A stretch of DNA of 64,000 nucleotides, from positions 1,054,001 through 1,118,000 of the forward strand of contig CBFDEM010000053.1 in the NCBI GenBank assembly GCA_965603825.1. Reading direction: 5' to 3'. Made by a program: the position numbers and the translations under genes. The DNA comes from Blepharisma stoltei ATCC 30299 (taxonomy: Eukaryota > Protista > Ciliophora). Positions 1 to 63,971 of the stretch are shown in pieces (the first letter of the stretch is position 1; every line of letters begins with the position of its first letter). The notes beneath the pieces were generated by a model. The model worked only from the letters and a program-made list of their open reading frames with translations. It made no database searches and was not told the origin of the DNA.

Positions 1-2814
1 ATACTAAAGAAAAGAAAAATAGCAGAAATCTTAAGGAAGCAAAGAGGAAATGATGTTGATTATAATTTTACAGTTCTTGCAGATTTACTCATTTTTATTA
101 TTTTTTGATCCTTATTCATTACTCTTGTAGTAACCAGACTTGAAATTTCTTATGTTTATACTATTTCTACTCAAACAAAAGACTCAATAATTGTTCCAAA
201 ATTCTATAGCAATTGGCACAATATAACTTTCCAAGAAATCACCACAAGTAAAGATGCGTACAGCTTTATGAACGAAATTTTCAAAAACTATATGCAAAAG
301 GTAACTGTTAATACCCAAAATAATTGAATAAGCCAAATTAAAGCAAGAATTACATTTACAAGATATCGGATGAGCAAAAATAAAAGCTCATTTTCTAATG
401 AAGTCATTCAATATGTTATTCCAGATACAGAAACCCAAAATACAACTGATTTCCATGGAGTAGCAACTTTTAAGAAATATATTTATAGCCCATCAGGATC
501 ATTGAAAACTTACAAGAGTAAAGGAGGATATGTAATAGAGCTAAATAACAAACAAAACATATCCGATATAATCCAGCAAATTGAGCTTGATGATATTTTC
601 AGTCGCAATCTTAAAGATTTTTATATAGAATGAGTCCTTTACAATCCCAATGTAAATATGTTTTCTTACAGTGTCATACATTTCAACAAGCTCGTTTCAG
701 GCAATATTGACCCTTCAATTTATTCTGGAGTTATAGATCTTGATATATATAGTTCAGGCTCTCCAATGATTGTTATAAGTATCTTGTTCTTTATGTTCAC
801 TATTTTATATTTAATCAAATTTTGCTATTCATGATATTTGGTTTGGAAAAAAGTCTATAAACAAAGGAAGGAGAAAACCCTTATTTGAAAAATTGCAAGA
901 CATGTAATTGATAAAATTGAAGAGAATGAGATCAGCGCAAGAGATCATTGCTTTAGATTTACTAAAAAAGCCTTAACCTGATACTGCTACACCATAATAG
1001 ATCTATTATATTCAGCATGATTATTAATTAAAGGGGACATTTTTCAATTGTTCAGCATCGTTTCAACAATCATGTCGCTAATGATGATTTATTATGAAAT
1101 AATGCTTGTTCAGAGTAATTTTTATCAAAACTTTAAATTAGATTCTCCTTTTGTGGCTTGAAAGAACTGCATAGGTGAATTTTCGGAAATAAATGATCTT
1201 TTGTATATATCCGGGACATTAGCTATGTTTACGTGCCTAATTTTATTTTTGAGACTTATTCAATATTTTGAATTCAGTGACTATTTATCAAATCTTACAG
1301 ATGTTATTAAATCTGCATCATTTGACTTAGCATTCTTTACAATTGTTTTTATTATTATTTTAGCTGCCTATGCAATTTCTAATTATCTAGTTTTAGGACA
1401 TCATGATATAAGTTTCAAATTCATGGAAAGCTCTTTCTTGTCAACTTATTCAATGCTATTGTGCTATTATGACATCGGCTCAATTTTGCAAGCCGATAAT
1501 TTGTTAGGGGCAATACTTTTTATAAGCTACATGGTGATCTTCAATTTTATGATGCTGAACTTATTTATAGCTATCATTTTTGCTCATTACACAGCACTTA
1601 AATCAACCCGTCCTAAGAAAAGACTTGGATTTTTTGAAAAATTTTGAAAAGTCATTAAATATAAATTTCAAAACAGAAAATTAATTATCGACCCAAATAA
1701 AATCAAAAAAATCGAAGACATCGCTGATGAAAATTTGTTTGTAAATTATAGCCCAACAGTCCTTGAAGATGCATTCATAATTGATGATAAAGCCCATATA
1801 AATTCCTCCTCAAATAAATGGCTCAAGTCTTTAGAAGATGGAGTTTCCGACCATTCAGGGAATGAAATAACTTTTGCTAAATTAAAGGCAGATTTTAGTA
1901 AATATTGTGGCATGATAAACACTGATTTAATTCAGCCAATTCAATTAAATGAAATTTGCTTTATGAATCCAGAAATATGAAAAGACGAGAATGTTGAGCA
2001 AAAAATAAAGATTTGAAAAACATTAACAAATTTATATGCACAAGAGTATAGGCTGGAAATAGAAAAATCTGTAAGTGAAGGAAAAGACATAAAAGAGCAT
2101 GGATTATCTCCTTTGCAGAAGCAGCTATGGGAAGCTACGCCTATGAACGAAAAACTTGAAATGTGGAGTGGAAAATTGCATTTTTCTGAGGAAGAAAGAA
2201 TCAAAATATGAAACTCAACCAACTATAGCAAAGAGTTTATGGAAAAAGATGCAAATATAGAAGAGCAGAAGAATTATTGACTTTCATTGACTATTGCGCA
2301 AAAAAATGATTTGGTTTCGAAAATTTTAGGCCCTTTTAAAGGAATCAAGAAAAAAATGAAAATCGAGGAATCTTTCCTTGATTTTTATATCAAAAATGAA
2401 GCACTGTTTACTAATGATACCAAGATGCTCTTATGAGCCAGCTTATATGAACATGAAATTAGTAAATTCTTGCTTTTTATGAATCAAAATGATAAAGTTG
2501 AGGCCGAAATTATTGCTTATATGATTATGGATGACAAAAAACACAACCTATTTGCTATGGATCATGCTGATCTTAACATGGAAGCAATTTTAGATGCCAA
2601 AATATTTGATAAATATACAGAAATGGCTACTTTTCAAGCAGAAAATGATGGTAAAATATCATGTGAAGAGAGAATCTTTGAAACAAACAATGAGCACCGA
2701 AATTTGATAAATTATAAGCACAACCTTCAAGAGGAACAAAAAACATTCATTAAAAAGAATAAGAAGCTACAAAAGCGAGTTAAAGAACTTAGGTCCAAAC
2801 TTGAAAATAGATAG
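1..2814 (+). CDS. Polycystin-2/PKD2-like (TRPP) cation channel, 5'-truncated by window edge
   Basis: Frame 1 is open from base 1 to TAG 2812-2814 if 14 in-frame TGA are read as Trp, joining ORFs 370, 1201, 1735 and 2470 (all the same frame). Has a TOP-domain-like segment (GGYVIEL...FYIEWVLYNPNVNMFS) and an S4-S6 region (LFLRLIQYF...DLAFF...FMMLNLFIAII), then a C-terminal coiled coil. Confidence 0.85.
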
Positions 2815-3090
2815 GTATTTTCAGTCTATTATAAAACTAAACAATAATTAGCGAAAATATTTATAATTTTATTAAAATCAGCCATATCTCTAAGCTTAAA
2901 ACTGAGGAATTATTAAAAAAATTTGAAAATCATAAAAGTGTTATCTTGAGAGGGAAAAAAAAATTAATTGAATATTTTACTTATCATGACTTAATATGCT
3001 CAGAAGGCAGAGAATAAGTTTAATAAGATATCTATAAACTTAAGAAATTGTGTAATACTATTCATATTTTAATGATTCTTATTAATCAAT

Positions 3091-10128: not shown

Positions 10129-11565
10129 ATGTACGATTATGACTACAATATTTCCACTCAAAAAATTCGGTCTAGTAATGACTATCCAACAGATTCATAT
10201 AGGCAATTCAACGTAAAAGATCTTTCAACTAAAGAGTTGGAAGACATTGTTAGAGGTCAATTACCTTCTAAAGACTCGCCCCGGTTTTCTTCTCATCGAT
10301 CGATAAGTCCGCTCTCTAGACTCAATAAGTCCCCTCCACGAGATGCTTCTTCAAAATCCTTAGCTGGCGCTATGAGAGCTTTACAAGACAAAATTCATCT
10401 GTTAGAAACTGAAAATTCTGATTTAAAAGAAAGACTAATTGCGGCAGAAAGCAAAGGACAAAAAGACAGAGAACAATGGCAAGCCAGATGCATGGAAGAA
10501 TTAAAGCAAGCCAGTACGAAAGACAAAAGCATGCAAAGCAGAATCCTTGAACTAGAAGAAGAGCTTAGAAAGCATCTGCAAAGGGTTTTGATTTTAGAAG
10601 AACAATTGAAAATAAAAGAGACACAAATCAGGCATTGTGAAAACGAAATTAAAAGAAATATTGATCAATATGTGATTGATAAAGAAAATACTTCACTTCA
10701 GCTGGAACATCTTCAAAAGCAGCTTGTGGCGAAGTCAAAAGAAGAAAAAAATCTGAAATTAGCAGCTGAAAAATCTGAAAGAGAAAAAAACCTAGCCAAT
10801 GAAGAACTAGCTCAGGAAAAACGCATTTCCAGCGGCTTAAAAGCTGAAGTGCAATATCTTCGGGAGAACGCCAGCTCTCAAAGATCAAGTCTGCAAAAGG
10901 TGAATATTAATTAGAATTTTGAAATTATTGAAGCTGAATTAACCAAGCAAAACCAAGATTTTTCACAAAAAATAAGAGAGCTTGAGATTAAGTTAAGAAG
11001 CTTAAAAGAGCTTAATAATAATCAGTCTCAGCAAATCGATTTCTTAAAAAAGGAAAATCAGCAATTGCAAACAGCAAATAAAGTTTCTGAAGATTCCAGA
11101 GTAGAAGTATTAAGAAATAAAACCAACGATGACTCTATGCTTTCTCAAAAAAAAGTTCCCAGAAAGCCATCTAGAAGTGGAAAATTATCTGTGACTATAA
11201 AATCAAAATCTCCAACTCCTCATTCAAGCACGAAATCACTATTATCTGAGCCAAATAGAACAGCAAGGCATCCTTATGGAACTCAAAAGAAGTCGCTGGG
11301 CGAGAGAAGCTTATCACAGTTAATGCCAAATAAAGCTGAAAGAGATGAGGATTGCCAAACAGACATAGAAAAAGTTGAGCAAGAAATCAGCAGTCTAAAT
11401 ATAAAATATAAACGATTATTGCAGCATTCTCAAGAAGCAACAGGAGATCTTGGGGGTCTCAGGAGAGAATTAAGCTCACTTGCTGCTGATATGGAAAAGA
11501 AAAATGAAGAGCTGTATGAGCTAAAAAGAAGACAGCAAAGTATTCTTAAGCAGCGCTTATTTTAA
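10129..11565 (+). CDS. Cep57/translokin-like coiled-coil protein (exons 10129-10899, 10915-11565)
   Basis: ORFs 10129 and 11065 are in the same frame, separated by the TAG of a 15-nt intron. SKSLAGAMRALQDKIHLLETE resembles the Cep57 centrosome-localisation domain, and there is a C-terminal coiled coil. Confidence 0.75.
10900..10914 (+). other. 15-nt spliceosomal intron GTGAATATTAATTAG
   Basis: GT..AG with A at position 10. Removal restores a continuous coiled-coil ORF (LQK|NFEIIEAEL). Confidence 0.9.
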
Positions 11566-11941: not shown

Positions 11942-13051
11942 TTAATCAAGAAGCAGCAACCCTCCATAATTAGTTCCAATAAAAATTTGGTTCGTGCTTT
12001 CATTTATTCCAATAGCAGAGACTTTAATAGAGCGGGGAACATCAATGCAAGCGAGTATTTTTACTGGCGATTTGCTTATCACGAAAATTTTGCTAGTTTC
12101 ACTCGAAAAAGCAACAACCAACTCTTTTGTATCACTCAATACTGGATACTTCTCTTTGAAGTTCAAAACCGCTCCATAGTTAGTAAGGAAAATCATGGTT
12201 TCGCCAGTGTTTAAAATGATACCGTCATTTGAGTCCGGAACATATATTTGAGAAATCGAGTGTATTTGAACTTCAAATACATTTCCGTTCCTCAAATCAA
12301 TAAAAATTGTTTTATTAAGTCCTGCAATAAAAATTGAATTGTCTATTCTCCAAATGAAATTGATTTTGCTTATATCTCTTACAAAAAAATGGTGCTCAGT
12401 ATTAGGATTAAAAATGTTAATATGCAAATCTACGCCATTTTGGTTTGTCTTCCAATGCAAAATGCTAGAATTTGAGTATTGAAATTCATAATCACTAGGG
12501 ACTTCAATTTGGAACTGCAGTGCTTCTGTTAAGATGCTTCATATAGAAACTGTCTTGTTCTTTTTGAGAACAACAAAAAATTTATCAATGTCGAATTGAT
12601 CCAAATGGCTTATATTAATGTTTGAGCTTTGCATAATTTCTCTTCTGCAGTCACTTCCTTGAACAAGATTTATATAGTTATAACTATAAAACCTTAATAA
12701 GCTGCCTTGTGCTCTCTTTAATACAACAATGAGGCACTCTGATGTAAAAAAAGCTTTATACGCAATCTCATTCCTTTTGGTTAAAATTATCCACGATGAC
12801 GACAGCAAAATTGTACCGAAAATTGCTTTTCCTCTTTTGTCGATAGAGACAATGAAATTGTCTCTGCTTCTAATTCAAATCGATCCTGAGCCTATTTTTT
12901 CAGCATTGATTGTTGAATTTTTTGGATAAAAACACTATATAATTTTTACTGTTAGGGATGCATTATTTCAAACTAAGGCTTGCTCTAAATAACTAGCTGA
13001 AGAACTTTGACCGATCTCTCTTTTAAAGATGAACTCTTCGATTGAATCCAT
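11942..13051 (-). CDS. WD40-like beta-propeller protein, tandem copy 1 (369 aa)
   Basis: ATG 13051 to TAA 11942 gives 370 codons with TGA=Trp. Beta-strand-rich, ending VSAIGINESTNQIFIGTNYGGLLLLD. Same length as the paralog at 14770-15879. Confidence 0.8.
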
Positions 13052-14769
13052 TATATATAATCGCTTTATTATAATATTAATAGCTGCTTTATATATTTAA
13101 TATTAAAATAGAAAAACTAAAAGAAACTGAATTATTAAGTGATGAAATTAGCAAATGATCTCTAGGTCAATAAATTAAAGCCATTTTACAGAATAATTGC
13201 AATTTTATATATGTATAAAAATGCCATTCAAATCACAGATTATTTATTGATAATTTTTTTGTAAGATTTTCATCGAAATTAAGGGATTAAACGTCCAGAA
13301 AATGATTTTGAATCAAACTTTATCCTTTGAAATGTATTATCTTCTCTGTGTAATTCTGAAGGCTAAAACCTATAAAAGAGGAGAAGTGAAGAAATCTTTC
13401 TGTAATCGACACGGAAAGCTAACTACTCAAAAAAGGTGATAAAAGCGTTTATATGCAATTACTAATTAAATTGGTGCATTAGTGGCTATATGGAGGCAGA
13501 ATGAAGTTTTCAAAGGTTATAAAAATAATAATAGCAAAATTAACATTCTTGTGGAATCAAGCTTTTATATAAACAGAATGATCAAAAAATATTGATTAGC
13601 ATGACTTAAAGTTTAATTTAGTTGAGCTAGAATGTTATTTGTGGAATAATTATTCAATAGATATTTTAGAATTATAAACGTAAATATGCTTTAAAATTAT
13701 TTATTAGTTTCTCCAGGATAATTCAAAAAGATTGAATTAATGGCTTAACTCTTCATCAACGACAGATTTAGGCTATTTTAAGAATTAATCTTTTTATTCT
13801 CCTGAGCTGTGAAAGAGACGATGGCAAAGTTTATTTTATTGAAATTAATGCTTTAGCATAAAAGCGGATTCATAGCCTTATTGAAGTATGTAAAATTGTG
13901 TTGCAAGTCAATACAATATTAAATTCGAAAATTTTAAAATTTTCTATAAGCGCTTTTAAGTTATTTTATGACTCCTCTTGGTACTTACTAACTCAACATA
14001 AAATAGAGCAAATAAATAAAAGAGCATATTAATTAATTCTAATAGAATTTGTAAATAAGCCCTCATCATCGAATTTAGTGCAAATAGCATGAAAATCATA
14101 ATATATTTTGAATATAACTAATCAAACTGGCAGCTAATTATCAAAATTTCAAAAAGATAAGTATGAGAGAATACTCACTCACCTGATTTGAAATAGAAAT
14201 TGAGCTATCAAGATGGGAATCAGAACAAAGTATGAGCAGATTATGTTTTAATGGCTAATACAAAAAAGTAAAACGATGATTATAGTAATAATTCATAATA
14301 AAAATTATTAGAAAATAATGGAATCAAATGTCAAAAATGCTTAAAAATAGTATCTTTTATTATTATAAGTAGATTATAATTTAAATTATTAATTCTTTGA
14401 TCTTATGGAATTTAGTGTGTACTCTATTTGCAGATTTCTAATAAATTTGATTGTTTAGCAACTTTGCAAGAAACTTCATAGCATTGAGAAATATCGATAT
14501 ATGATTTTGTCAAGCATTTTGGAAAATGAAGGTGAGATTGATTTAGTGGGAATACAGCACATATTAGCAAGCGTCTTCATTATAATAATTGATAAATTTA
14601 TTTAAGCAAAGATCTAAAAGGGTTCCACAAAGAAATTTGATAGTGCATATTTTTAGCTAATTTTATGTTCGAAATATCAAGAATGAAAAGACTTTGAGCA
14701 CCCTTAGCTAAGCAAAGCTCTCATAAATTTATTAATTAAAATTTTTTGGATTTAAAAAGATTAGCTCTA

Positions 14770-15879
14770 TTAATCAAGAAGCAGCAGCTCTCCAAAATTA
14801 GTTCCAATAAAAATTTGGTTCGTACTTTCATTTATTCCAATTGCAGAGACTTTAATAGAGCGGGGAATATCAACGCAGGCAAGTATTTTTACTGGTGATT
14901 TACTTATGACGAAAATTTTGCTAGTTTCACTCGAAAAAGCAACAACCAACTCTTTTGTATCACTTATTAATGGATATTTCTCTTTGAAACTCAAAACCGT
15001 TCCATAGTCAGTAAGGAATATCATGGTTTCGCCAGTGTTTAAAATGATACCGTCATTTGAGTCCGGAGCATATATTTGAGAAATCGAGTATATTTGAATT
15101 TCAAAGACACTTCCGTTCCTCAAATCAATAAAAATTATTTTATTGAGTCCGGCAATAAAAATTGAATTTTTAATTCTTGAAATAAAATTGACTTTATTGA
15201 TGTTTCTCACAAAAAAATGGTGTTCAGTAATCGCGTTAAAAATTTTAATACGCAAATCTAAGCCATTTTGGTTTGCTTTTCAACACAAAATGCTAGAATT
15301 TGAGTACTGAGCTTCATAATCATTTGGGACTTCCATTTGGAATTGCAGTGCTTCTGTTAAGATGTTTCATATAGAAACTATTTTGTTCTTTTTTAGAACA
15401 ACAAAAAAATTTTCAATGTCGAACTGATCCAAATGGCTTATATTAATGCTTGAGTTTTGCATTATTTCTCTTCTGCAGTCGCTTCCTTGAACAAGATTTA
15501 TATAGGCATGGCTATAAAATCTTAATAAGCTGTCTTGTGCTCTCTTTAAAACAACAATGAGGCACTCTGATGTAAAAAAAGCTTTATATGCAATCTCATT
15601 CCTTTTGCTTAAAATTATTCACGATGACGACGGCAAAATTGTACCTAAAATTGCTTTTCCTTTTTTGTCGATAGAGACAATGAAATTGTCTCTGCTTCTA
15701 ATTCAAATCGATTCTGAGCCTATTTTTTCGACACCAATTCTTGATCCCTCTGGATAAAAACTCTGCATAATAATTACAGTTAGAAATAAATTATTTCAAA
15801 CTAAGGCTTGCTCTAGATAATCGCTTGATGAGCTTTGACCTAATTCTCTCTTATAAATGAATTCTTCAATTGAACCCAT
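14770..15879 (-). CDS. WD40-like beta-propeller protein, tandem copy 2 (369 aa)
   Basis: ATG 15879 to TAA 14770 gives 370 codons with TGA=Trp. Colinear with copy 1 at an offset of 2828 nt. Confidence 0.8.
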
Positions 15880-17711: not shown

Positions 17712-19058
17712 ATGAACTTAGGAACAAGAATCAATATAGAAGAAACAAAATTTGACGATTTCAATAGTAAATTCCTACAAGTCAGAACCATTCCAAGAAG
17801 TATAGAAGTCTATGGAATAATCCTTGCCTATATGGAATTTTGCGCACTCTATTTACAGATTCCTAATAAGTTTGGTTTATTTGACAATTTTGTAAAAGAC
17901 TCTCTATCCCTTGATCAAGATCAATATGAGTATTTATTATGGTTCTATCGCAACTTTTTTGGAAAAGAAGGTGGTATGGATTTTATTGACAATGCTGCAC
18001 AAACAAATGATTTCATAATTTTTGTCCATAAAGTTATAGAAGCAATGACATTAAAAGGCTGTACAAACCAAATCCTCAGTGCTTATAGCTTTTTGACTAA
18101 AAACTTGAAGTTTTCAATAACAAGAGCTGAAAATGAGAAGACTTTGAGCGCTATAAGCCAAGAACAGTCTCTCTTTACTATCAATTTACTTTATAGAGGT
18201 GACACATGCAACATATTTTACCCTAGAATTGGGTTAGAAAATGAAAAGATTAGATATGAAATACGAGTAGAAAGAAATAAAACACTTTTACACTGTGGGT
18301 GCTTAGTTGATAATCGCGAAATAAGAGATGCACAGCTTTGCCAATGTGGAACTAAATTATATTCAGTTGAAGCTCAAATATTGCAAGCTGAAGTTAATAA
18401 TAGTAAATCTCAAAATCATTCCTTGCCTAAGAGTGATGAACCTATAGTTCCACTACAAGTGCCAATAATAAATCCCCAGCCTCTCCATCCTCTTCAGCCT
18501 CTTCAACCTCTTCAGCCTCTTCAGCCTCTTCAGCCTCTTCAGCCTCTTCAGCCTCTTCAGCCTCTTCAGCCTCTTCAGCCTCTTCAGCCTCTCCAACCTT
18601 ATTCAGCTATTCCTCCTTGGTTCACTTATTTACTCTCAATATTAATTATCGCTTTTGTGATTTGTGCGACTCTCTATAGTTTTGGCCTGCCTAACTTTTT
18701 CAGCACAACAAACCCACTAGAATATAAGTTTAATAAAGAACGATTATACAGACAAAAGCCCAGCACGCCTTTAGATAATTTTATGATTAAAGAATTCATA
18801 ATTTTACAGGATCATATATTTGCTACAAATGATAAAAAATATAAAATGAAAACAGATAAAATCGCTTCTCGAAGCTTTGATTTGATTCAAGATTATTCAT
18901 TCAAAATTGCTACTCGGCACTATCTCCTAGAAGAAAACAAATTCGAGAAAAATAAATTAGAATGCAAAGAGTTCAGCGATTTAGAACATGAGAACTTCTT
19001 CAAAGATAATTACGATTATTACTCCAAAAAAGTAAAATCATGGTTTGGATATCCCTAA
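17712..19058 (+). CDS. Single-pass membrane protein: degenerate otubain(OTU)-like N-terminus, Cys cluster, (QPL)n linker, TM helix
   Basis: Intact 448-aa ORF. FTINLLYRGDTCNIFYP resembles the otubain His box LLYRPGHYDILY. HCGC...CQCG cluster and TM segment WFTYLLSILIIAFVICATLYSFGL follow. Confidence 0.7.
   Translation: MNLGTRINIEETKFDDFNSKFLQVRTIPRSIEVYGIILAYMEFCALYLQIPNKFGLFDNFVKDSLSLDQDQYEYLLWFYRNFFGKEGGMDFIDNAAQTNDFIIFVHKVIEAMTLKGCTNQILSAYSFLTKNLKFSITRAENEKTLSAISQEQSLFTINLLYRGDTCNIFYPRIGLENEKIRYEIRVERNKTLLHCGCLVDNREIRDAQLCQCGTKLYSVEAQILQAEVNNSKSQNHSLPKSDEPIVPLQVPIINPQPLHPLQPLQPLQPLQPLQPLQPLQPLQPLQPLQPLQPLQPYSAIPPWFTYLLSILIIAFVICATLYSFGLPNFFSTTNPLEYKFNKERLYRQKPSTPLDNFMIKEFIILQDHIFATNDKKYKMKTDKIASRSFDLIQDYSFKIATRHYLLEENKFEKNKLECKEFSDLEHENFFKDNYDYYSKKVKSWFGYP
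18477..18599 (+). repeat. 9-bp coding tandem repeat (CAGCCTCTT)n, ~13.7 copies, encoding (QPL)n
   Basis: Directly visible, near-perfect in the core with variant units at the ends. Confidence 0.97.
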
Positions 19059-28661: not shown

Positions 28662-28686
28662 ATTATTTGCTAGTGATAACAAATTT

Positions 28687-34716: not shown

Positions 34717-34949
34717 TTATTTGCTTATCAGAATAAAAAGAACAATTGGCTATATATATAGGTATCAAATTGATGATGTCATTGATCATTTTCATTAAAA
34801 AGTCTTTGACAATTAAATTTTGTAGGTTTTAAAAAATCAATGCTTTCTTATAATATTTAAAAATTTATTTATAGCTGACCAAATTCCTCATGCGCCAAAT
34901 TTAAAAAAATTCGAAAAATAATATATTAGGTTGCATTTTACTTTTAAAC

Positions 34950-35972
34950 TTATTCAATAAAGCTAAACTCAACTTTCAAGGGTAAATGATCTGATGGAAA
35001 CTCTCTATTAGGGATCGCTATTTCTCTTGCTATTTCCTCTTCACTTGGCAACATTAAAATTCTTTTAGGTTTAATCTCATAAGTATGAAATACAAAATCT
35101 ATACACCCTTTAAAATTATCAGTAAAATTTGTGAATTTTGGATGCTCTTTTCCTTCATATCTCTCATATGCAGACCTAAATTGAATTTGCGGTTTTATTC
35201 CTAATGATTCCAACTCTTGGTCTATTTCTTGATTCCCAGTAGCTTTCCACAGCTTTCCGTAAAATAGATTTACAACATTGGAGGAAGGCGTTGAATTGCA
35301 ATCCCCACAAACTACTGCAGGACAATCATATTGGTGTTTTAATTTAATAAGTTCATCAATTAGGATCCCAGCTTGAGCATATTGCACATATTCAAACTCC
35401 GGATCCCAATAAAAATGTGTGCATGCAATTGCTAAGTGTCTTTTGCTTAATTTTTCTTTAAAAACTGCAATAAACCCAATCCCATCTCTTTTATAGCTAC
35501 GATTTGTTTGACATTTTCAATGATTATTATAGTCAATCCTCTTGGATTCTATTTGAAGATACTTATTTGCTTTTCATGCAAGAACTAAACCATCTCTAAA
35601 CTTTGCTGAGCCTCTTTCAATAAAAACGCTCCTATATCCAATTGAGGAAAAATAAGATTTGAATTCTGGATACTTATCTACCTCTTGAAGAGCAAAAAAG
35701 TCTGAGTTTAGTTCATTAAAAATACTTTTGAAAAGAGATAATCTATAAGAAAAATCTCGATATTTAGGTTTTGCATAACTATGAAATTGAGTATACATAT
35801 CAGCCAAGGTATTATAAGTTGTAATAGAAAAATTTACAGGCTCTTCAATATTATCAAAAGATTTATACGAAAAGTTTTGGATCTTGTAGACTCGCTGTGC
35901 TAGAATCCTTTTAGAAAATATTCAATAGAGTAGTGCAACTGTTAAAAGTCCTATTATGACATAAAGCCACAT
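34950..35972 (-). CDS. CCR4/nocturnin/Angel-family EEP phosphoesterase with N-terminal hydrophobic anchor
   Basis: Motifs TYNTLAD, ALQEVD, THFYWDP, CGDCNS, FTNFT..FKGCIDFVF and FPSDHLPL. Single frame with TGA=Trp. N-terminus MWLYVIIGLLTVALLYWIF. Confidence 0.9.
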
Positions 35973-41818: not shown

Positions 41819-44362
41819 TTATTCTGCTTGCTCTTCCATCTCTTCTTCATCTTCGTCTCCTGCAATTCCATCCTTTCCAGCTCTCCCAGCAGGATATACT
41901 GCTTTTTCCAGCTTCTTTTTCTGTTCTTCTTTTGTCATCAGCGGCCTCTCCGGATACTTCAGCCTCAGCACATCTACAACCCCAGCTGCATTTCCTGACA
42001 CTAGAACTGGGAATTCTTTGCAAAATCTCACCATAGTCCTTGGTGAGTCCCTGTTCTCTGGTTTTCTTGTAACAATAGGCTTTGTATTACTGTCAGATAG
42101 ATCCCACAGTTCAATTCTTCCATCATCAGCAACAGAGCTAAAAATAGTTGAATCATGAGGCGACCACTCAATATCGTTAACTGCATCCCTTAAATCTTGT
42201 GCTTGGCAAGTCATGATTGAGTTTTCTTCTCTTCTCCAGTCCCATATTTGAACTGTCCAGTCAGCTGAACAGGTAAGCATAATATTTGACCAAAACGGAT
42301 TGCAGCGGACTTTGTAAACTGGTCCTGCATGGCCCCAATAAGTATCAAGCTCATCATTGTAGCTTAGACTGCATTTGTGGATGGTCCCTTCTTCAGTAGA
42401 TGCTAAATATAGCAAGTTTTGATCTCTTGGGAAGTCTAATGAAAATCCAACCGCATTTCTGAACACTGCAGCTTCTTTGTCATCTTTTTGGTTTGGGTTT
42501 GTAGGCTTTTTAAGGTTGAGGAGATCTCGGCATTCTAAGCCTTTTTTGATGCTCCATTCAGTGATTCTTCCATCTGAAGAAATGGAGATCAGATTTTCAC
42601 CTTTTTCGCTGCCTTGATCATGCCACCTAACTTCCCAGACAGTGTCAATGTGCTTTTCAAGCATTTGGCTTGATTCTGCGACTGGTTTGTTGTCTTTTTT
42701 CCTTACATCATAGATCGCTACAACACCATCATAGCTTCCAGTAGCTATCAAGCTAGGGTTATTTTTAGAAAAATGGCAAGAAATCAGTCCTGTGGGTGCT
42801 TCAATAATTCTTTCAGGGAATTTCGGACTTTTTAGTGTCCAAAATAGCAATTTCCCAGGTTTTCTTGAATAAGGATCATGCTCTCCATATGAAACTGCGA
42901 GAAGATCAGGATTCAAAGTATTTCAATCAGCGCAGCTAACAAGCCTATTTTCCACTTCGCTGCATTGGAACTTAAAGAGGTCAATCATCTTGGTAGCTCC
43001 TTCATCCTCATCCTCCTTTTCTTCTTCTTTTTTCTCTTCTTTCTTTTCCACCATATCTTTCAGCCTTCTTATTTTCGATTTCCCTTTATCATCTTGTTTT
43101 TCTTCTTCAACAACTTTAGTAAACTCCACCTTGGGGTAATTTCTATATAAAATTTGTTGCTCTAGGTATCTATTTTGGGTTAAAATTCTTTCTACAATGT
43201 TAAATTTGGCGAGAAGACTGTCTGGAAGTATGATGTCTTCTGGAGGTCGGAATGGAGTAGGCTCATTTTCATGGGCTGCTGATGTTTGAGAACGCTTGGA
43301 CTGCTCTACAGAGGAGCTGGATAGGACACTTCTGCTTGACTGATCCACTCTTCTAGACTCTCTTGCAGCTTTACTGGTTGTGCCTGTATCTTTTAGCTGG
43401 TTGCTTGGCTGGGTTTGTGAAATACTTAAGCTGTAAGTTTCTGTAAGTGAGCTTTCTGGGTCTAATAAAGTCCCACGATGCTTGAGCTGATCATTTAGGC
43501 TTGAATTCACTTCAATTGAAAACACCTTTGCCACCTGCTCATGTGCAGGCTGGATTTCTTCCAAAAAGGCGTCATGAAGCATCCATTCAGTCACTTCACA
43601 GTCGAATTCGTGCCTCTTTATAGTTTCAGTGACGACTTCTTTTACTTTTGGCATCAAATTTGTCGTCTGCGCTGGCCTCATCTGGAAATTATCACTCGCA
43701 ATTTTTTCCTTCAGCAGCAATTTATACTTTTCATTATCAGCATCTGAAAGTTCTTTAGTTTCTGATTTAGCGCTCACAGCAATGCTTGGCAAATAAAAAA
43801 GAGTGAAGGTTTCAGTCTCATTCAAATTGATGTCCACAAGTTTGTCTAAATCTTCTTCTTTCAAGCCTTTATCTTCAGTTTTAGTTTCTTCAGCAGCTTT
43901 TACATCTCTGCCAGTTTCATCAGAGACTTCAGAGAAAACTTCACTTTGGTCAGCTGATCGTAATAAGGAGCTTCCTCCTATTTCTGAGTATTTTATTTCG
44001 CTTCGAGACTGAGATGCTGAAGCTTCTGATTCTTTGCGCTCTGATGAAGATGCTTTTAATGATCCAGTTTGTTCTCCGTCTTTCTTCTCACCTTTTTCTT
44101 CTTCAGCTAGGATGATAAGGGGCATAGGTGTGACGTCGACTTCAATGCCTTTGATTGTTATGATTTCGCGCTCGTCAGTTAAGTTTGTTGTGGTTGTGCT
44201 GAATTTGCCCTTGGTTCGGTTTATTTTGCCGTGGTGGGATGAAACTTTGCCAGTGACTCCTAAGTTGCGAATAGTGGGCCCAGCTTTCGGAAGCTTGCGG
44301 ACACTTTCTCTGGGAAGGTTTTTGGTGCTGCTATCAATTTTGGCTCGCGACTCTGATTGCAT
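41819..44362 (-). CDS. DNAI4: Axonemal dynein intermediate chain (WDR78/DNAI4/IC138-like)
   Basis: The two ORFs join through TGA 42923 (VSCADW[TGA]NTLNPDLLAVSYG). WD40 repeats plus FWTLKSPKFPER, ISISSDGRITEW and the N-terminal INLNETET motif. Confidence 0.85.
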
Positions 44363-49736: not shown

Positions 49737-50951
49737 ATGGATAATGCAATTGGATGCCGATTTATTAAAGAATCTACTATTGGAGAAGGCAATTTCGGTT
49801 CAGTATACCGAGTTATTGATACAACGAATAAAAAGCGTGTCGCGTTAAAAATAGAAAAGCCAAATCTTGAGGTTTCTCAAATAGAAAATGAGATAAAAGT
49901 TATCTCAGCAATGAAAGGCCATCGAGGATTTCCTCGACTAATTGACTCAGGGACTGAAAACGGTTCCATGTACATTGCAATGCAACTCCTAGGTTCTAGC
50001 CTTGAAGATAAATTTCAAGAATCCAAACAAAATTTTGGACTTATGGCTATTTTAAATATTGCAGAACAAATTCTTATGAGAATTCAAGCTTTGCATGATA
50101 AATTCTTCATCCATAGAGACATCAAGCCTCGTCAGTTCCTGTTCAGTCCAACCCCAGGTTCTTCGACAATTTATATGATAGATTTTGGGTTATCTAAATG
50201 CTATCAGAATGGAAAAACAGGAGTCCATATCCAGTATATGGAAAGTAGGCCGTTTATAGGGACAGCTAATTATGCGTCAATTAACACTCATATAGGTATT
50301 CAGCAGAGCCGCAGGGACGATTTGGAGTCCTACATGTATATGATTTCATATTTTTTAAATGGAACTTTACCATGAATTTCGAAAGACCATACAGTCTCAG
50401 AAAGGGAAATAAGGCTAGCTAAAAATCGAGTCTCAGTCAATGAGCTGTTTCATAATGGACCGGCAGAATTTGTTCTTATGATGGCTTATATTAAAAGTAT
50501 TTCTTTTGAAGACAAACCAGACTATGAGTACTTGGAAGGGCTGATAAAAAGAATGAAATCAAACACAGCTGTCGAAAAAAGAGGTGTCAGCTGATTTGAG
50601 TTTAATTCTGATGATAAAAATCCGAAAACTTTGAAAAGAAAAATAAGAAAAGCTATTACTGACCCTTTTAACGAGCAGCCAAATCTGTTTAAGGCACTTG
50701 ACCAGTGCACTGAAATTGCAAACAGAAATAATACAGCGACGCTAAATTTAGAAAAAGAAGAAGAGGAGCAGGAAGGAAACGATGGAGAAGAATTAAACGA
50801 TGAGCCTATGTCTGCCTGCATCACTGAAGAAAAGGAAAGTTATCCAGAGATCAAAGACAGAAATATTTTGAAAAACCGAGAGGAATTCCGAAAAAGCAAA
50901 AGTCTTGACTCTGAACTTCCAATGGAAGCGCAAAAGTGCTGTGTAATGTAA
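49737..50951 (+). CDS. Casein kinase 1 family protein kinase
   Basis: Motifs IGEGNFG, VALKIE, HRDIKP, IDFGLSK, GTANYASIN.H.G.QQSRRDDLES and GTLPW[TGA 50373]. A second TGA is at 50592, and the protein ends in a CCVM CaaX-like motif. Confidence 0.95.
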
Positions 50952-50968
50952 GAATTAATATATTAAAT

Positions 50969-53959
50969 TTACATTTTACCTGCAATTTTTCGGAAATTTT
51001 GTAATTTTTCATCAGCTGTCAGAACTTTTTTCTTGTTTTTTCTGCGTTGCTGTTGAACCCATTTCTTTTGCAGATGTTCTCTTGTTTCCACCTTGGTGAA
51101 GCCCCATTCGTCAAGCTTTTCTTCAAAATTTCTCTTGTTGGTTGTCCCGAGAGGTGGCAAAGATCCTTGGCTGCTAATAGTATTTTCGCTTGTTTTAGAT
51201 CTTCCCAATGGTGAAGGAGGCCTTCTCTGTGCTGGCGCTGCTTTGAGAGGAGGGAGTCTTGGGGTTTTATTTTCTTCTTTAGCTGGCTGTAAAAACTTTG
51301 AAAGATCAAGGCCCTTGGGAATAATTAAATCATCCCCAAAATTAATATTTGTATTAATATCATCAATGTTGACTTCTTGAAATTCGTCCAAATCAATGTC
51401 ATTTATTTTTGCATTGCTAAGAGCAATTTTTATTTTTTTACGAAGGTTATATCCTCGGTATGCTGCTTGAATTTTCGTTATTTTTTTAAGGTCATACCTT
51501 GAATTTCCAGGGTTTTTCCTTACCAAGTGTCCTCTATAGCATGACTGAATTTTTATAATTTGAGAGATATGGTTTTGATGCTTCATTAGCATCATTTTCC
51601 GCTTAAGAAATCTTGTTTTCCATCATGTTTGAATAACTAAACAAGCCAAGCTATCTTTATGAAGCAGCACTCTAGCATTATACCAATAATATTCAATATC
51701 TCTACCACAAAATTCCAGTTTAGGCTCACACCCCATGTAATTATAAAGCCTTGCAGGGAGTTGAAACAACCACATTTTCATTTCTTCACTTATGTACTTT
51801 GCAATAGGAGCCTCTCTTTTCTCTTTTTGTACTAATAATTCGCATTGTTTTAGCTCAAAAGCTTGCCTTGCCAAAATTCCTGATAGTCTGTTTACAACTT
51901 TTGAGTTCGAAGTCCTTGGGGTGTTATTTAAATCCTGCAAATTTGGTAGAGCCTTGACCAATAATTCATTATAAAGTGGCACAACTTCAGGCCGTGAGTT
52001 CATAAAAGGGTTATCATTATAAGAAAGATGAGTCAAATTGGGTGCTCCTTTTATACAAATTAGCAGCTGATGGAATCTCGGCAAGTTATTGAATGACAAA
52101 TTACAGAATTTCAGCATTTTGCAATTGAATTCAGAAATTGATGCTATTGCATTGTCTTCAAGCCTTAAAACTTCCAATAGTGGGACATGTGAGAGAAAAT
52201 CAAGGGATTTCAAGGAATTTCCATTTAATCATAGCTCTTGAAGCAACGGAAGCTGAAGAGGCTGAATATCACTTATTTTATTCTGATACAAAATCATTGA
52301 TGTCAACAGCTTCAAAGGATTCAAAAAGTTGACATCTCTAAGCTTATTGCGTCCTAAATCTAGATATTTTAAATATAAATTGGTATTAAAAGCATGATCA
52401 GGGATGCTTTTAATAAAATTTCTATACATCAACAATCTTTCCAACAACAAATTTTTTTCCAATCCTTCAAGCTTTACAATCTTATTGTTATTTATAGACA
52501 AGCACCGCAAATTTGTACAATTTTTTAGCCCAGATAAAACTGATATTTGGTTTAAGTCTAAGTTCAAAGATTCGAGCAATGGAAGATTCAGATCGGGGAT
52601 ATTTTGTATCAGGTTTTGCGATAAATCAAGTTGGACTAAAGAAGGTGGCAGGTTTTGGATTTTTGAAATCTTATTGAGACTTAGAGCAAGGGTTTGGAGA
52701 TTTGTAAACGATTCTAGGCCAGATATTGATTTAATTCCTTCGTATTTCAATTCAAAGGAAGGAGACTTGGAATTTAAGGGATAAGGAAGGAAGCTTGCTA
52801 ATGTTGGCTCTTCTAGCTTTGAAGTTTCAGGCTTGAATGGAGGGAGTTTTGTAAGGAGTGTAGGCCTTGGTAAAGGAATGGGGTCAACAATATAAGCCTT
52901 TTCTGTAATTGTTTTTGATGGGATTGGCTTAGGAAGCTCAACAGTGGTAGCTTTTGCAAATGGTTTGAATTGTATTTTGGGTAATTCCAAATATTCATCA
53001 ATTATTTTTCTCTTCTGCAAAACGCCAGGTAGTTTTCTGAAGAGTCTTCCAAAATCGTCTTCATATTTCATGCTTCGGTTTTCTCTTAATAAGTTATCAT
53101 TTTCTTCTTTCTTTTTTAAAAAACTTCTTAACATTCCTGAGAACTCATCTTCTGCTTTCATAGCTGAAGCCTCTCATTTTTGCTGTCTTGCTTCTTCTCG
53201 TTTTCGTGATTCTTCGATTTTTTTTTCTTTTTCAATTCTTTTTTGTTCTTCTTCTATTCTTTTTTCCTCCTTTATTTTTTCTTGTCTTTCTTTTTCTTCT
53301 CTATTCTTCTTTATTTGTTCATATTCTTGCTTTTTTTGCTCCCTAACTTTTATTTCTTCTTTTTTCTTTTCTGCTTCAACTTTTTTCTTTATTTCTTCTT
53401 GCTTTTTAATTTCCTTTTCTTTTTTAATCCAATTTTCAATCATTTTCGCTAGCATATCCTCTTCTATCATTTGTTCAATTTCAGCTTCTCTTTTTAAATT
53501 TTCTTCTGCTTTTAATTTCTCTATTAAAATGCTTTCATTTTCGCTTTCAAAGTCTTTTTCTAACTGGTTTAAAATTTCTTTTTCATTTGATTCTTCTCAA
53601 ATAGCAAGATTCTGCACTTTTTCGATTTTCTCTTCTTCAATAACTTCTTCAATCTTTTCAGCAACCTGGATTGAAGCTGTTAAATCTACATTTTTTGTGG
53701 CTTCTCTGAGCCCATATAGTGCTTTAGCAGCTTTTTTTTGGATTTTTTCCTGCTCCTCTTCGACTTTTCTCTGGCTTTGCAGAAATAATTTCCAATTTTC
53801 CGAATCAATAATCGACTCTTTGACTTGAAAACTTTCAACCACTTTAAAAGACTCTTCAGGCTCACTTTCTGTCTCTGAAACATCAAAATCTTTCAAGCTT
53901 TCATCTAATTTTGCAGCTATTTCTGCATACTCTTCTTCAGTCATTTTCCCATATTCCAT
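50969..53959 (-). CDS. LRR plus IQ-motif protein (LRRIQ1-like, 996 aa)
   Basis: Five same-frame ORFs joined through TGA 53597, 53174, 52229 (LQELWLNGN) and 51623 (IQTWWK). SDS22-like LRRs, with IQSCYRGHLVRK and IQAAYRGYNLRK motifs. Confidence 0.85.
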
Positions 53960-54008: not shown

Positions 54009-54680
54009 TTAAAGTGTCTCAGCGGCCTTAGGCTCAATGATTTCAATGTGGTCAGGAAGTGGCCTCTTAGGTCCAGTAACTCCTTCAGGATCTTGTGAGA
54101 GCATAATTTGCACCTTAACTCCAAGGGCTCCTTGCTTAAGCAAGACGTGTCTGACTGCTTCATCAACAAAAATCTTTCTTGGCTCTCCAGTGCTGATCAT
54201 GTACCCATCTCTGAACTTCATGGTCTTGGCTCTTTGGGCTCTTAATTTACCAGAGACTGCAATTTCAATACCCTTGGCTCCGCTCTTCATAGCGAACCTG
54301 ATAACTCCATTGGCTGCCATTCTGACTGGGAAACCAGCAAGGAGCTTGTATTTCATGCTTTCAGCCTGGACAGAAGCGCTAAGACCTCTGTTAGGGACTT
54401 TTCTAGCGTAGAGTTCTAAGCTGTCCTTAGGGTAGTTGAACCTCTTTCTGATCAAGGAGCTCAGTTCTCTGATTCTGGTGCTGTTTTCACCTACGACTTC
54501 ATCAGTCTTGGTGGCATAGATGCTGACTGAAGTCTGGGTGTTGGTGGCCATAACGTCGATGCCAGCGAACCCTTCTTGAGCAAGAGTCCTTGCAAGGAAG
54601 CCGTAAAGCTCAGCTTTGACAAGGCCATCGTGGACGAACTTCTTTTTCTTGTTCATGTTCCTTGCTCTATCACCTTCCAT
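54009..54680 (-). CDS. RPS3: 40S ribosomal protein S3 (uS3)
   Basis: KKKFV.DG..KAEL, RIREL, RGLSA..QAES, SGKLRAQRAK.MKF.DGYMI and PLPD motifs. Confidence 0.98.
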   Translation of the reverse strand: MEGDRARNMNKKKKFVHDGLVKAELYGFLARTLAQEGFAGIDVMATNTQTSVSIYATKTDEVVGENSTRIRELSSLIRKRFNYPKDSLELYARKVPNRGLSASVQAESMKYKLLAGFPVRMAANGVIRFAMKSGAKGIEIAVSGKLRAQRAKTMKFRDGYMISTGEPRKIFVDEAVRHVLLKQGALGVKVQIMLSQDPEGVTGPKRPLPDHIEIIEPKAAETL

Positions 54681-57513: not shown

Positions 57514-57557
57514 ATTCAAGTAATTTATGTATTCACGTATTTAAATAATCATTTAAT

Positions 57558-58311: not shown

Positions 58312-59697
58312 ATGGAAAACTCAAACTTGAAAAAGGTGAACAAATTCAATCCTATTTACTACACACACAATATCAGAGACTGATGAAATTATATGACTTC
58401 AACATTTGGGTTTAACTCACTTTTTATTCTGGCCATGGTCTATTGATCCCAAGGATTACGCCAATTCGGGGTTTTAGCTTCAACCTTATATTACATGGAC
58501 GACTTAAAGCTTGACCCCGCAACTGCACAAATCATAAGAACTTTTACTTTTACAGCTTGGTACATTAAGCCAGTATATGGGATGTTCAGTGATAATATAC
58601 CAATTTTTGGGTACCGAAGGATAGCTTATATGATTTTGGCAAGCCTTTTAGGGATTTCAGCATATTTGAGCATTTTATTTACTGCCAACCTTTATTGGGT
58701 TGTTTTTGCACTGATTTTAGGAGAGTTTGGGCAAGCTATTTCTGATGTAATCGCAGATGCCATTATGGTGGAAGAGTCAAGAAAAGACCCAGTCGGAGGC
58801 TCCGGGTCTTTACAATCATTTTGCTGGATTACTCTTTCATTTGGAGGTTTTTTAGGATCTATATTAGGAGGACTATGCCTCAGCTATTTAAACCCGAAAT
58901 ATGTAATTGCTTCACAAGCGATTTGTCCATTTTTATGCTTGCTAGTATCAGTGAGGCTAGATGAGGAACCTGTTTCAGACCCAATTTCTTTCCAAGCGAT
59001 TTCTTCAAGAATGTGTATACTATGAGATGCTTGCAGAAAGCCTTCAATTTATAAACCTCTTATTTTTATATTTTTATCAAACGCGCTTTCTCCATCATTC
59101 TATGAGCTGATGCTGTATTTTATGAAAAATGAGTTAGGTTTTAGCCCTATGCTACTATCTACACTAAATATTGTAGGGTATATAACCTTAGGATTTGGCG
59201 GATTTGCATACAACAGATTTTTCAAATTATGAAGTTTTCCGAAAATTTTGGGTACTGGACAAGTGCTCAGCTGTATTTGTGGGATTTTTGATATTTTATT
59301 TGTGCTGAAAGCTTATGAATATATACACTTTTCAGCTGTAGCTTTTGCTGTCAGTGGAGATACTCTTAGTGGGATTATAAGCTTTACCTTTAAATCAATG
59401 CCTTTAATGGTTTTAAGTGGAAAGCTATGCCCAGAAGGTGTTGAAGCCACTCTCTTCGCACTTTTTGCATCAATCAGCAATTTTAGCTATGCAGTGTCAA
59501 TATTTTTTGGAGGAATGCTTACACAATGGTTTAGGATTAGTGCAACAAATTTTGATTTAATTTGGATTCTTATGGCCATTCGAGCCCTTACCAAACTGCT
59601 TCCGTTGCCTTTCTTAGGGCTGCTACCTCAGGAAGAAACAAAAAATGAGGATGAAATTATAGAGTTAGAAGTATTAGATGAGCCATTTACTGTGTAA
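58312..59697 (+). CDS. BT1 folate/biopterin transporter (MFS)
   Basis: ATG 58312 with a single frame under TGA=Trp. Motifs VYWSQG, WYIKPVYGMFSDNIPIFGYRR, DVIADAIMVE, LQSFCW and LCPEGVEATLFALF.SISN. Confidence 0.93.
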
Positions 59698-59813: not shown

Positions 59814-62800
59814 ATGTCTATTCTGACAAGACCAGTCGTTGAGCTTGCAAGCTATATTTTGACTAAGCTCCATGGTGGTTTTCTATTAGACCAATTTGAT
59901 CACAAGCAATTAAAAACAAATCTTGTCGATGGCGTTTACATGTTAAAAGATTTGCGGTTAAATCCAGAACAAATAAACAAAAATTTAAAAGATAGCCCTC
60001 TGCATATATCAAAAGGATCAATAAGCCAATGCACTCTTAAATTCCCTTCATTACTAAGACTTGCGAGTGACCCGACTTCTATAAATATTCAAGGTGCAAT
60101 CATCGAATTTTGCAGCGCTAAGGAATCTGGGTTTCCTGTTTTGAGAGGCCAGCTTTTTGCTTCTCTGAATGAAAGTGAAGAAGATTTACAAGGTGTAACC
60201 CTCCTTACCAAAGCAATAGGAAATTTTCTATCCAGCACAAGCCTGAGAATCAATGTTTTGATAATCAGGATCCGAAATAAGCCAGCGGATAAGGAATTTA
60301 TTCAGATCTCAATTCCTTCATTGCAACTAATAGATTTAGATTCTGAAGAAACAGACGGAAAACACAAATTAATGACGATTCAAGGTCTCTGTGCCAGCAT
60401 TCTGCATGAAGAAGTAGAAGTGCCAGTGTCTTCTGATTATTCAAATATTTGCTCGTTTGAAAATGATATAAGTTTTCGCATAAAAATTTCAAGGGAATTG
60501 CTGAAAATTGACAGTGAGATTGATAATTTGAATTTTATCGTAGGGTTTGATCAGATGATGGCAATGCTAAGGATAGCTTTATCTATGCAGAAAAGCGATA
60601 TTTTGATTGATGAAGCAGAAGTGATTGCTAATGACAACTCTGAGGACTCTGATGAAGAAATAAAGCAAGCTATTGAGAACCCTGAAAATTATATAGATAT
60701 AAGGAAAAAAGAAATCAAACTGAGTTTATCAAATTTTAATTTAGCAGTTCTTGTTAACGAGCACGCAGAGTTTGTAAAAGTTTGGAATGCGAGTTTTGAT
60801 AATTTGGCATCAATACCTGGGTCTTATATTCATGTAAATTTAGCAGGCTTATCTGTTTTCAGCTCTCATTCAACTAGGATAAGACTAGGAAGTTTTCAAA
60901 TAGCTCACCATCACTTAGTGAACCAACCAGACCTTGATTCTTCAGAATTGTTCAAGTCTGCCAGGGAATCTTTTAACTCAGATTTTTTCAGATCTCGTGA
61001 CTCCTTAAACTGGTCCATTGATACTAACTCCCAGCATTTTTGTATAAATTCTGTAGTAGCTATAAAGCCAATATTTAATTTTCAAGAAAAATATAGTGTG
61101 AATATAGAATTTAAGGATACCGAATCAAGATATGAAATTGGTGAAATTGATATAAATATTGACAATGTTTTATTAGAATGCCTCCAAGCTTTTTCTATTT
61201 ATTCTAATAAGGCTCCCAGTGAAGAAAGTAGTGGAGAAGTTACACTAATTCTTGATATTCCAATGATTAAATTGGAATATAGGCACTATCATATAGAAAG
61301 CCATGCACCAAGATGCTGCTGTGAACAAAGTCAGCTGTGATCGTTAGGAGGGGAGATTCAGGAATTATTATGGCACAATTCATTGAAGTCGTCATCGCTG
61401 AAGATCAACACGGTGAGTTTCAGAAGTAAAGAAAATAATACTGAACGCGATATTTTAAAGGGTAATAAATTATTATATGAAATTGGGAAGGTTGGATTAT
61501 TGGAGCCTTATCAAGAAGGGAAAAAACCACTAGAATTTTTGGATTATTATGCTGAAGGACAAGGAAATATACGAATATTCATAGGAAACAAAGCGATTGA
61601 GCCTTATTCTTCTCTTGAGGGCGAGTCGCCTAATATAAAGTACCATGAAATCGATAAAAAAAATGAATACTTAGCTATTAGCAAATGTTTTACATATAAC
61701 AAGCTCCTGCTGCATTCACTAGAAATATGGCTTGATCCAAGCACACTAAAAAAGGTGATATCTCTAATCCCGCAATCTTCATCCAAATCTGAAGTAAATC
61801 TAAATACTGATTATTACTCCTACACAATTGAAAACGCAAATATCCATTTATATGAAAATATAAGCAACCAAAAAGCCACTGCATCTGCCTCATTTTCAAT
61901 TTTTGAATATCTATCATTCACCAACTGCTTTCCGAACAAAATAAATTATAATAGATGTACATTTAACTCCTTTGATATTCAATACAAAGACAATATAATT
62001 GCCCACAACATCGGGCCAGCGCCATTCCTATACGTCCAAGAAGACGACGATATAAAACTTGGCTTTAAAGAAATCATTCTTTACGCTGAACAAATTCCAG
62101 ATTTCGTCGGGTTTTTTGACAATTTCTCCTTTTCAGATAATTCCAAGCCTCCATCCAATGACTCTGAAAATGCCACGAAAATAAATTTTGCTTTTGAAAA
62201 TATCTACTTCGACTATTTAATTGGAGAAAGTAGATTTTTCCTATGCATACAAAATTGTAACCTTTGAAGCATTCTTTCAAGTCCAAATTCATCCAATTTT
62301 CATTTTGCCCTTGATTCTGCTCAATTATTTATAAAATATCCAGTTAATTCTCGCGAGCAAGTGATTTCTATTTCTTCTTTAACATATGTGAAAACGCTAC
62401 AATCTCTTCATTTTGCTTTAATTTCTACGATTACAGACCTAGAAATCTTTTATACATCGATTAAAAAGGAAAAAAATATTGATGAAGCTGATGAAATCAA
62501 TGAAGCTTCGCCACCTTTTATTGAGTGCATGTTAGGATCAGCTGAGTGTAAGCCAATTTTATCAAATTTGTATGTAAGCCAAGAAGTCAGATGTCAGATC
62601 CTAAAAGAAGAATATTTAGAAATTCATGCAAACGTTGGCTGCTGGATTATTCATATGTGCAAAGATACTGTTGATGCAATATCTAGTGTTTTAGGGTCCT
62701 TCAGCAAAGGTCCCAGTCAAAAAGAACCTCAAGTCCCTCAGAGAAAAAAAGAATTCATATCGAACTCGACAAATCAGCATGAAGATATTAACTTGCAAAG

Positions 62801-63971
62801 CTACCTGGCAGAAAACGATAAACCACTCCTACCGCCTCCACTTATGAAAAGATCTTCCTCAGTAAAATCCTCACAAATTTATCATACTCATTTAAATTCT
62901 TCACAACTTCGGCAAACCAATACAATTGACTCTCAATTCCACCAACTTCAGCCCCAGCATGGGTTTCCCAAAGTAAAAATTTCTCTGAGTTTGTTCCATT
63001 TAAGAATAAACCTTTACTCAGGTAAAGATTTTAATGCTTCTCGAGCAATCACCCCTGGGCTTTCATTTATTTGTGAAAATTTAGGACTGAGCTACTCCAA
63101 ATTCCCACAAACTATGAATTATTCTTGGAGACTGGCACTGTCGATTGAAGATTTTGAAGCACTCGATAGGGTAAAGCTAAGCACAGTTAAGCAGCTTATA
63201 AGCTTTGATAAGAAAACTATTAGGAATTTAGGTTCCCAAATGCTTCAATTTGAAATTTCTGGGATCTGGCTATCTCCAGCAATTTCAGATGAAATCGAGC
63301 TGATCGTCAACACAAAAATTTTGCCTCTAAAAATAAGCATCGATCAGCATTTAGTTGATTTTTGCATTGATTTTATTGACAATAATGCAAAATCTTCTCC
63401 AGAGGATCCATCATTCTCTGATATTGAAACAAAAAAGACGACTTTTATTCAGCGGCTTTCTTTTGATGATATTTTTATAAGCCTTGATTATATTCCTCAT
63501 AAGATCAATAGAAATCTTTCTGGCGCAAACTTGCTGAATATTTTCCATATAGAGGATTTTAAAATTCACCTGCCGAGAATAAGCATTACAAGTGCAAGAG
63601 ATTTTCAGCAAGCAATTGGCAAAGCATGGGCGTTTTGACTTAAGCACCTCAAAGAGAGAGAGTTTTTAAAATTTATAAGCGGGATTGGTCCGCTCACTAC
63701 AATAAAAAATCTAGGCAGTGCTTTATATGAAATAGCAAAGTTGCCTTATAGTTCTAATTCTCAGTCAGATGGCGCAAAACAAGCTTTACTGGGGTTAGTT
63801 AAAGCTGTATTTATAGAGACGTTAAGACTTACGGAAACGGTGCTAGGAGGAGCTTACACCGTTTTGCAAACTATGGGAGTTGTGGCTGGCATTGATATGC
63901 CATCACGGCAAATCTTGATAGGGCCTTTGATAAAAGCCCAACATGCGGTGGAGAACCAGAAGTGAAGATAA
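59814..63971 (+). CDS. ATG2: Autophagy-related lipid transfer protein ATG2 (Chorein-N, bridge-like; 1385 aa)
   Basis: Four same-frame ORFs joined through TGA 61338, 62265 and 63636, then TGA 63963 and TAA 63969-63971. Chorein-N start (YILTKLHGGFL...LKDLRLN), PLKISIDQHLVDF, FIQR..ISLDYIP and SGIGPLTTIKNLGS. Confidence 0.85.

Follow-up and report, generated by a model that had tools for sequence, protein, structure and literature searches.

UGA as a tryptophan codon in a gene-dense window of the Blepharisma stoltei macronuclear genome, and a possible counterpart in Stentor-related metagenome contigs

The macronuclear genome of the ciliate Blepharisma stoltei ATCC 30299 has been published as a 41-Mb assembly of 64 contigs with 66% AT (bioRxiv 10.1101/2021.12.14.471607), with introns of 15–16 bp, UGA encoding Trp, and annotation under translation table 4 (bioRxiv 10.1101/2021.12.14.471607; PMC9942806). 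TGA was reported to account for 36% of its Trp codons and TAG for 18% of its stops (bioRxiv 10.1101/2023.10.09.561518), and UGA to be depleted before stops (bioRxiv 10.1101/2023.10.09.561518; 10.1101/2021.12.14.471607). Here we analyzed codon reassignment in a 64,000-nt stretch of this genome (the window, G000:C53:1054001-1118000, of which positions 1–63971 are presented), where G000 denotes the macronuclear assembly (64 contigs, 41,464,486 bases). The window is gene-dense, with ~42 gene models and ~73 in-frame TGA codons under a code in which UGA would encode Trp and UAA and UAG would be the stops. A sequence-only reading of the window had proposed this code, attributed the DNA to the Blepharisma lineage, suspected that the code was already known, and held that it would alter the whole annotation.

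The window derives from the macronucleus of a heterotrich of the genus Blepharisma, specifically B. stoltei. The comparison that the sequence-only reading had suggested, with ribosomal protein S3 (RPS3, 54009–54680, minus strand) as taxonomic marker, gave 222 of 223 residues identical to a B. japonicum protein; this gene contains zero TGA codons and is present in NCBI/UniRef. Together with introns of 15–16 nt, the match bears out the proposed lineage. The suspicion that the code was known was also correct: the code is real but already published for this very genome, B. stoltei ATCC 30299 with table 4. Because the public annotation already applies UGA = Trp, that annotation is unchanged, contrary to what had been claimed.

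All seven TGA codons on which the reassignment had first been argued are in frame at exactly the positions given, each within a long frame free of TAA and TAG. Four are on the plus strand (50373 in casein kinase 1, CK1; 31851 and 31920 in a MORN-repeat gene; 25157 in a zinc-finger frame), and three on the minus strand, where they appear as TCA on the forward strand (40780 in a TBC-domain gene, 42923 in a dynein intermediate chain-like WD40 gene, and 52229 in a leucine-rich repeat, LRR, gene). Gene models were built with a simple caller that allowed introns of 15–16 nt and whose scorer was trained on code-4 frames. TGA was present in 24 of the 42 window models, which together contain 73 TGA and 106 TGG codons. 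With the same caller, the coding share was 75% under UGA = Trp vs. 61% under the standard code, which broke the genes into 70 fragments, a comparison that is indicative only given the training of the scorer. Pfam matches extend across TGA on both sides in the BT1 and LRR genes, and the TBC match reaches up to its TGA. Every B. stoltei gene needs to be read with both UGA = Trp and 15–16 nt introns, as otherwise over half of the genes look broken.

To identify the amino acid read at UGA, we tallied residues in homolog and paralog alignments with TGA written as X, in sense frames only. The TGA column of CK1 (49737–50951, plus strand; TGA at 50373, in the invariant LP-W, and at 50592) is Trp in all 116 full-length homologs, and the remaining four homologs were truncated at that very codon by standard-code gene callers. 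In paralogs from ~330 kb of G000, the residue opposite TGA was Trp 22 times, TGA 37 times, and Cys 0 times, with TGY opposite Cys 175 times. A contig from Logan SRR24908292 (L089) is syntenic with 44.8–54 kb of the window at 47–68% protein identity; window TGA was opposite TGG three times and opposite TGA twice, and window TGG was opposite TGA three times. Two of the eRF1 paralogs of G000 (L033 and L034) have TGA where the third (L032) and human eRF1 carry Trp15. These alignments suggest that UGA almost certainly encodes Trp in B. stoltei. Separately, L089 and a second contig of the same Logan accession (L090) come from a different ciliate, probably a distant Blepharisma, in which TGA is also found in frame at Trp sites and introns of 15 nt occur.

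The claim that TGA occupies invariant Trp positions in unrelated families stood only in part. It holds for CK1; the MORN sites fall in aromatic W/F/Y columns (W 75 and F 79 at 31851), and the dynein intermediate chain and zinc-finger sites are matches to a motif only. UGA might instead be read as Cys, as in the Euplotes code, or as selenocysteine (Sec), for which a tRNA-Sec(UCA) gene exists. However, Cys was never found opposite TGA in the paralogs, homologs show Trp or another aromatic residue at the window sites, and TGA in over half of the gene models is well beyond any selenoproteome, so that we consider this reading very improbable, and the alignment tallies already refute it at the window sites; Sec is likely at a few other sites. 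Still less credible, to the point of being almost negligible, is an origin of the TGAs from assembly errors or as premature stops of pseudogenes: they are restricted to Trp columns, they are kept or exchanged for TGG in a syntenic ortholog ~50–68% identical, RNA-like contigs match the genes, and in-frame TAA and TAG show no comparable load. Conservation between species already rules this reading out.

The RNA-like contigs also bear on whether the standard code is kept and TGA is edited to UGG in mRNA by A-to-I editing. Stop-codon correction of that sort occurs in some fungi. The contigs come from a run (X8) that was only guessed to be RNA; they are gene-shaped, and the depth is zero between genes. 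They showed zero differences from the DNA over 31396–32327, 32834–34749, and 34942–35797, which together include 15 TGA codons, and one contig is identical across all eight TGA codons of the MORN gene. Because these 15 codons are unaltered, and with a short-stem tRNA-Trp present, editing is very unlikely.

A pattern search of G000 returned six identical tRNA-Trp(CCA) genes, in which the top pair of the anticodon stem is mismatched (A27:C43), leaving a 4-bp stem. As a control, the 27:43 pair was intact in 120 of 120 look-alike tRNAs among the matches listed (metagenome contigs >36% GC); likewise, when metagenomes were scanned for the tRNA-Trp motif, the matches listed were only tRNAs with a 5-bp stem, all on contigs >36% GC. 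Of the 63 tRNA genes that the Rfam search scored in G000, none was tRNA-Trp. No nuclear tRNA-Trp(UCA) was found in G000, and tRNA-Sec was the only UCA tRNA found, these searches being lower bounds; the UCA pattern matched 13 times vs. 14 for the reversed control, and tRNA-Sec alone was real. Two further UCA-pattern matches were rejected as tRNA-Leu(CAG)-like, and calls of tRNA-Pyl(cta) and Cys(aca) by Aragorn at a relaxed threshold were rejected as A+T-rich junk.

G000 contains three eRF1 paralogs and one Pelota. The most conserved eRF1 (L032) has Ala at the position of human Ser70 (yeast Ser67), as does L033, and L034 has Ser. Swart et al. described the same tRNA, with anticodon editing absent in 172,929 reads, and the same three eRF1 paralogs (bioRxiv 10.1101/2023.10.09.561518). 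Following that published work, the short-stem tRNA-Trp(CCA) would decode UGA by means of a wobble-position C:A mismatch, out-competing an eRF1 with weak UGA recognition. We consider it likely that UGA is decoded in this way, by a short-stem tRNA against a weakened eRF1. Synthesis of the two divergent eRF1 paralogs (L033:1435-2760 and L034:1450-2751, both plus strand) itself depends on UGA read-through near codon 15, and in both the NIKS motif is replaced by TSIKS, in one with Ala67 and in the other with Ser67.

Stop and Trp codons were counted in a sample of 172 gene models from G000 (60,673 codons). TGA accounted for 38% of Trp codons (264 TGA vs. 434 TGG), and 137 models end in TAA and 35 in TAG (20% TAG), partly by construction. 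That every gene ends in TAA or TAG, as had been claimed, is similarly supported in part: C-terminal signals stand directly before TAA, but the argument is partly circular as the frames were drawn with this code. The CaaX-like termini CSLL (a Ras-like gene) and CCVM (CK1), and the end of an Omp85 domain, directly precede TAA, and TGA shows no overall excess close to gene ends; on this independent support, UAA and UAG are stops and not sense codons. In-frame TAA or TAG in window genes was not observed except at a predicted intron acceptor.

TGA is scarce near gene ends: the TGA:TGG ratio is 14:52 over the final 30 codons and 250:382 in the rest of the models (Fisher’s exact test: P = 0.003). Leftover competition from eRF1 would make UGA scarcer there, and we propose that the scarcity arises because tRNA/eRF1 competition persists. 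The same depletion could reflect an ambiguous UGA, as in Condylostoma and karyorelicts, with UGA specifying Trp within genes but ending translation of some genes where it lies near the poly(A) tail. Compatible with such ambiguity, the eRF1 of B. japonicum weakly recognizes UGA in vitro, and TGA occurs within three codons of the stop in 3 of the 172 models: an ATG2-like gene in the window (59814–63971, plus strand; its final TGA, at 63963, is two codons ahead of TAA, spanning 63963–63971), L087:1157-2057 (minus strand), and L066:7931-8563 (minus strand). Terminal UGA is not demonstrated by as few as three models, which are candidate sites for residual UGA termination. Common terminal UGA would give an excess of TGA before TAA and TAG, but no overall excess near gene ends was found in the 172 models, and Swart et al. 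observed UGA solely as Trp in B. stoltei (bioRxiv 10.1101/2023.10.09.561518). We therefore regard ambiguity as unlikely.

The best explanation overall is, with scarcely less confidence than the identity of the amino acid itself, that UGA serves fully as a sense codon for Trp and that UAA and UAG are the only regular stops. This agrees with the claimed code, which the alignments of CK1 (116/116 Trp) and the paralogs (22 Trp vs. 0 Cys) support. The data show directly that in-frame TGA acts as a synonym of TGG, that the RNA-like contigs retain UGA, and which tRNA and eRF1 features the genome has. Several points weigh against it. The run used against editing is RNA by guess only, and contigs hide rare variants. 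Human eRF1 S70A reduces UGA termination 2.4-fold, but just 1.3-fold when eRF3 is present (PMC3025575). Ala67 in eRF1 is neither necessary nor sufficient, as standard-code Stentor also carries it (bioRxiv 10.1101/2023.10.09.561518). Finally, the end-depletion ratio is partly due to extra TGG near gene ends in a small sample.

The remaining TGA-containing genes of the window belong to varied families. The MORN-repeat gene (31401–32357, plus strand) has eight TGA codons (31851, 31920, 31959, 32028, 32097, 32124, 32127, and 32166), including a TGA-TGA pair, and stops at TAG. It is followed by a gene with five in-frame TGA codons and a TAG stop (32824–34716, minus strand), in which a zinc-binding dehydrogenase (ADH_zinc_N) domain is fused to C-terminal MORN repeats; this gene adjoins two more MORN genes and is spanned by one RNA-like contig. 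An Exo_endo_phos family gene (34950–35972, minus strand) has three in-frame TGA codons. The Cys-rich frame with RanBP2-like W-x-C-x2-C motifs, judged by eye (24815–25540, plus strand), has TGA at 25157 and 25244. The TBC-domain gene (39493–41037, minus strand, 5′ end not fixed) has a 15-nt intron at 40903–40917, TGA at 40780, 40354, and 39541, and a weak PF00566 match. The WD40 gene with TGA 42923 (41819–44362, minus strand) is named dynein intermediate chain-like by resemblance, its profile being WD40 only. Four in-frame TGA codons, including 52229 with LRR on either side, occur in an LRR/IQ protein gene (50969–53959, minus strand), and five, with a TGA-TGA pair, in a BT1-family transporter gene (58312–59697, plus strand) whose BT1 profile lies before and after the TGAs. 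A polycystin (PKD) channel gene that begins upstream of the window (1–2814, plus strand) has 14 in-frame TGA codons, and a paralog pair (11942–15879, minus strand; 11942–13051 and 14770–15879) has TGG and TGA exchanged at aligned Trp sites. CK1 carries a Pkinase match.

Tiny introns account for some apparent interruptions. A predicted 15-nt intron at 10900–10914 (plus strand), one of ~9 predicted introns of 15–16 nt, has its acceptor TAG in frame, and the apparent TAG gene end at 10912–10914 is probably this acceptor. A contig of a relative lacks 15 nt at 36061, which fits a spliced tiny intron. Of the introns in the 172 models, 18 have 15 nt and 6 have 16 nt; the caller permitted no other lengths. 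At least 57 pepsin-like aspartic protease copies were found in G000, and many of these matches hold a single in-frame TAG, most likely the acceptor of a 15-nt intron.

Other features of the window and its genome were recorded. An Hsp33-family redox chaperone gene (PF01430; 55132–56067, minus strand) represents a mostly bacterial family, here in a ciliate nucleus. An Omp85/SAM50-like gene on the minus strand is head to head with a plus-strand frame at 28495–29679, whose start is not fixed, and their long open frames overlap (27378–29679). At 18470–18600 (plus strand), a predicted membrane protein has LQP repeated in tandem, which produces a misleading run of TGA-containing triplets on the antisense strand. 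The Rfam/tRNA search of the window found zero tRNA or Rfam genes. The 18S rRNA is present in at least 12 near-identical copies over 11 contigs of G000, the window’s contig included.

The truncated CK1 homologs opened a side lead. Two of them trace to ENA metagenome contigs designated GROS21-1 (L091 and L093), and a third type was found on 17 contigs (L095–L097). The three contig types are L091, L093/L099, and L095–L097, with loci at L091:9995-15523, L093:3987-9780, L095:5854-21500, and L099:8469-21774. ENA assemblies with ciliate contigs relevant to this lead are ERZ19036562, ERZ19036617, ERZ19565752, ERZ19026250, and ERZ19034253. The scope is one locus with single-gene trees, and because L091 and L099 share a sample, some contigs may duplicate one genome. 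Gene order is as in Stentor coeruleus (CK1 and aminopeptidase N, with the aspartic protease and GBP too in two types), and the GROS21-1 aspartic protease is 77% identical to that of S. coeruleus and at most 60% identical to any B. stoltei copy. Two GROS21-1 types cluster with S. coeruleus in the CK1 tree (99/99), and all three fall in the S. coeruleus clade in the aminopeptidase tree, apart from Blepharisma (Shimodaira–Hasegawa-like approximate likelihood ratio test, SH-aLRT, 99–100). Forced grouping of the GROS21-1 aminopeptidases with Blepharisma was rejected for this one gene (approximately unbiased, AU, test: P = 1.9e-67).

In-frame TGA of GROS21-1 is opposite Trp of Stentor-clade references at 18 of 22 sites, and most GROS21-1 genes stop at TAA or TAG a few residues from the ends of their orthologs. 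In-frame TGA was absent in the other clade members examined, namely S. coeruleus L092, L094 (0 among 28 Trp codons), L098, and L100. L094, which derives from a JGI contig, was placed among the TGA-using types, and monophyly of the TGA-using types was rejected (P = 0.005). A tRNA search of the Stentor-like loci found none on them. S. coeruleus and S. pyriformis have been published as standard-code species. UGA = Trp in Stentor was not reported in the literature searched, a search whose coverage leaves out subscription journals and hence is no proof of novelty. Whether the GROS21-1 contigs represent a real, Stentor-related, unreported, and independent UGA-to-Trp reassignment seems to us evenly balanced on these alignments and trees. 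If they do, the Blepharisma code would extend beyond Blepharisma, beside close relatives without in-frame TGA, and they would offer a close natural comparison for asking whether a 4-bp stem in tRNA-Trp is by itself enough to change the code. The contigs bear on how often UGA reassignment arose.

Compared with known systems, the window matches the Blepharisma nuclear code (Singh et al., Swart et al.) in organism, code, 4-bp-stem tRNA-Trp(CCA), tRNA-Sec, the three eRF1 paralogs (two with Ala67 and one with Ser67), and UGA depletion before stops, and no differences were found; the TGA share of Trp codons is 38% here vs. 36% published, and TAG makes up 20% of stops here vs. 18% in the published data. 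In Condylostoma magnum, karyorelicts, and Blastocrithidia nonstop, too, a CCA tRNA with a short stem decodes UGA as Trp, and UGA is depleted near gene ends. They differ in using UAA and UAG as sense codons with context-dependent stops, whereas here UAA and UAG are ordinary stops and terminal UGA is not demonstrated. The codon table is identical for UGA and UAR to NCBI translation table 4, that of Mycoplasma and many mitochondria. In table 4 systems, UGA is typically read by a cognate tRNA-Trp(UCA), and RF2 is lost; B. stoltei, unlike them, keeps eRF1, and its searches, as lower bounds, gave no nuclear tRNA-Trp(UCA). The Euplotes code (UGA = Cys) shares with B. stoltei the UAR stops, a sense UGA, and eRF1 S70A, but in B. 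stoltei, where Cys was opposite TGA 0 times in the paralogs, UGA is almost certainly read as Trp.

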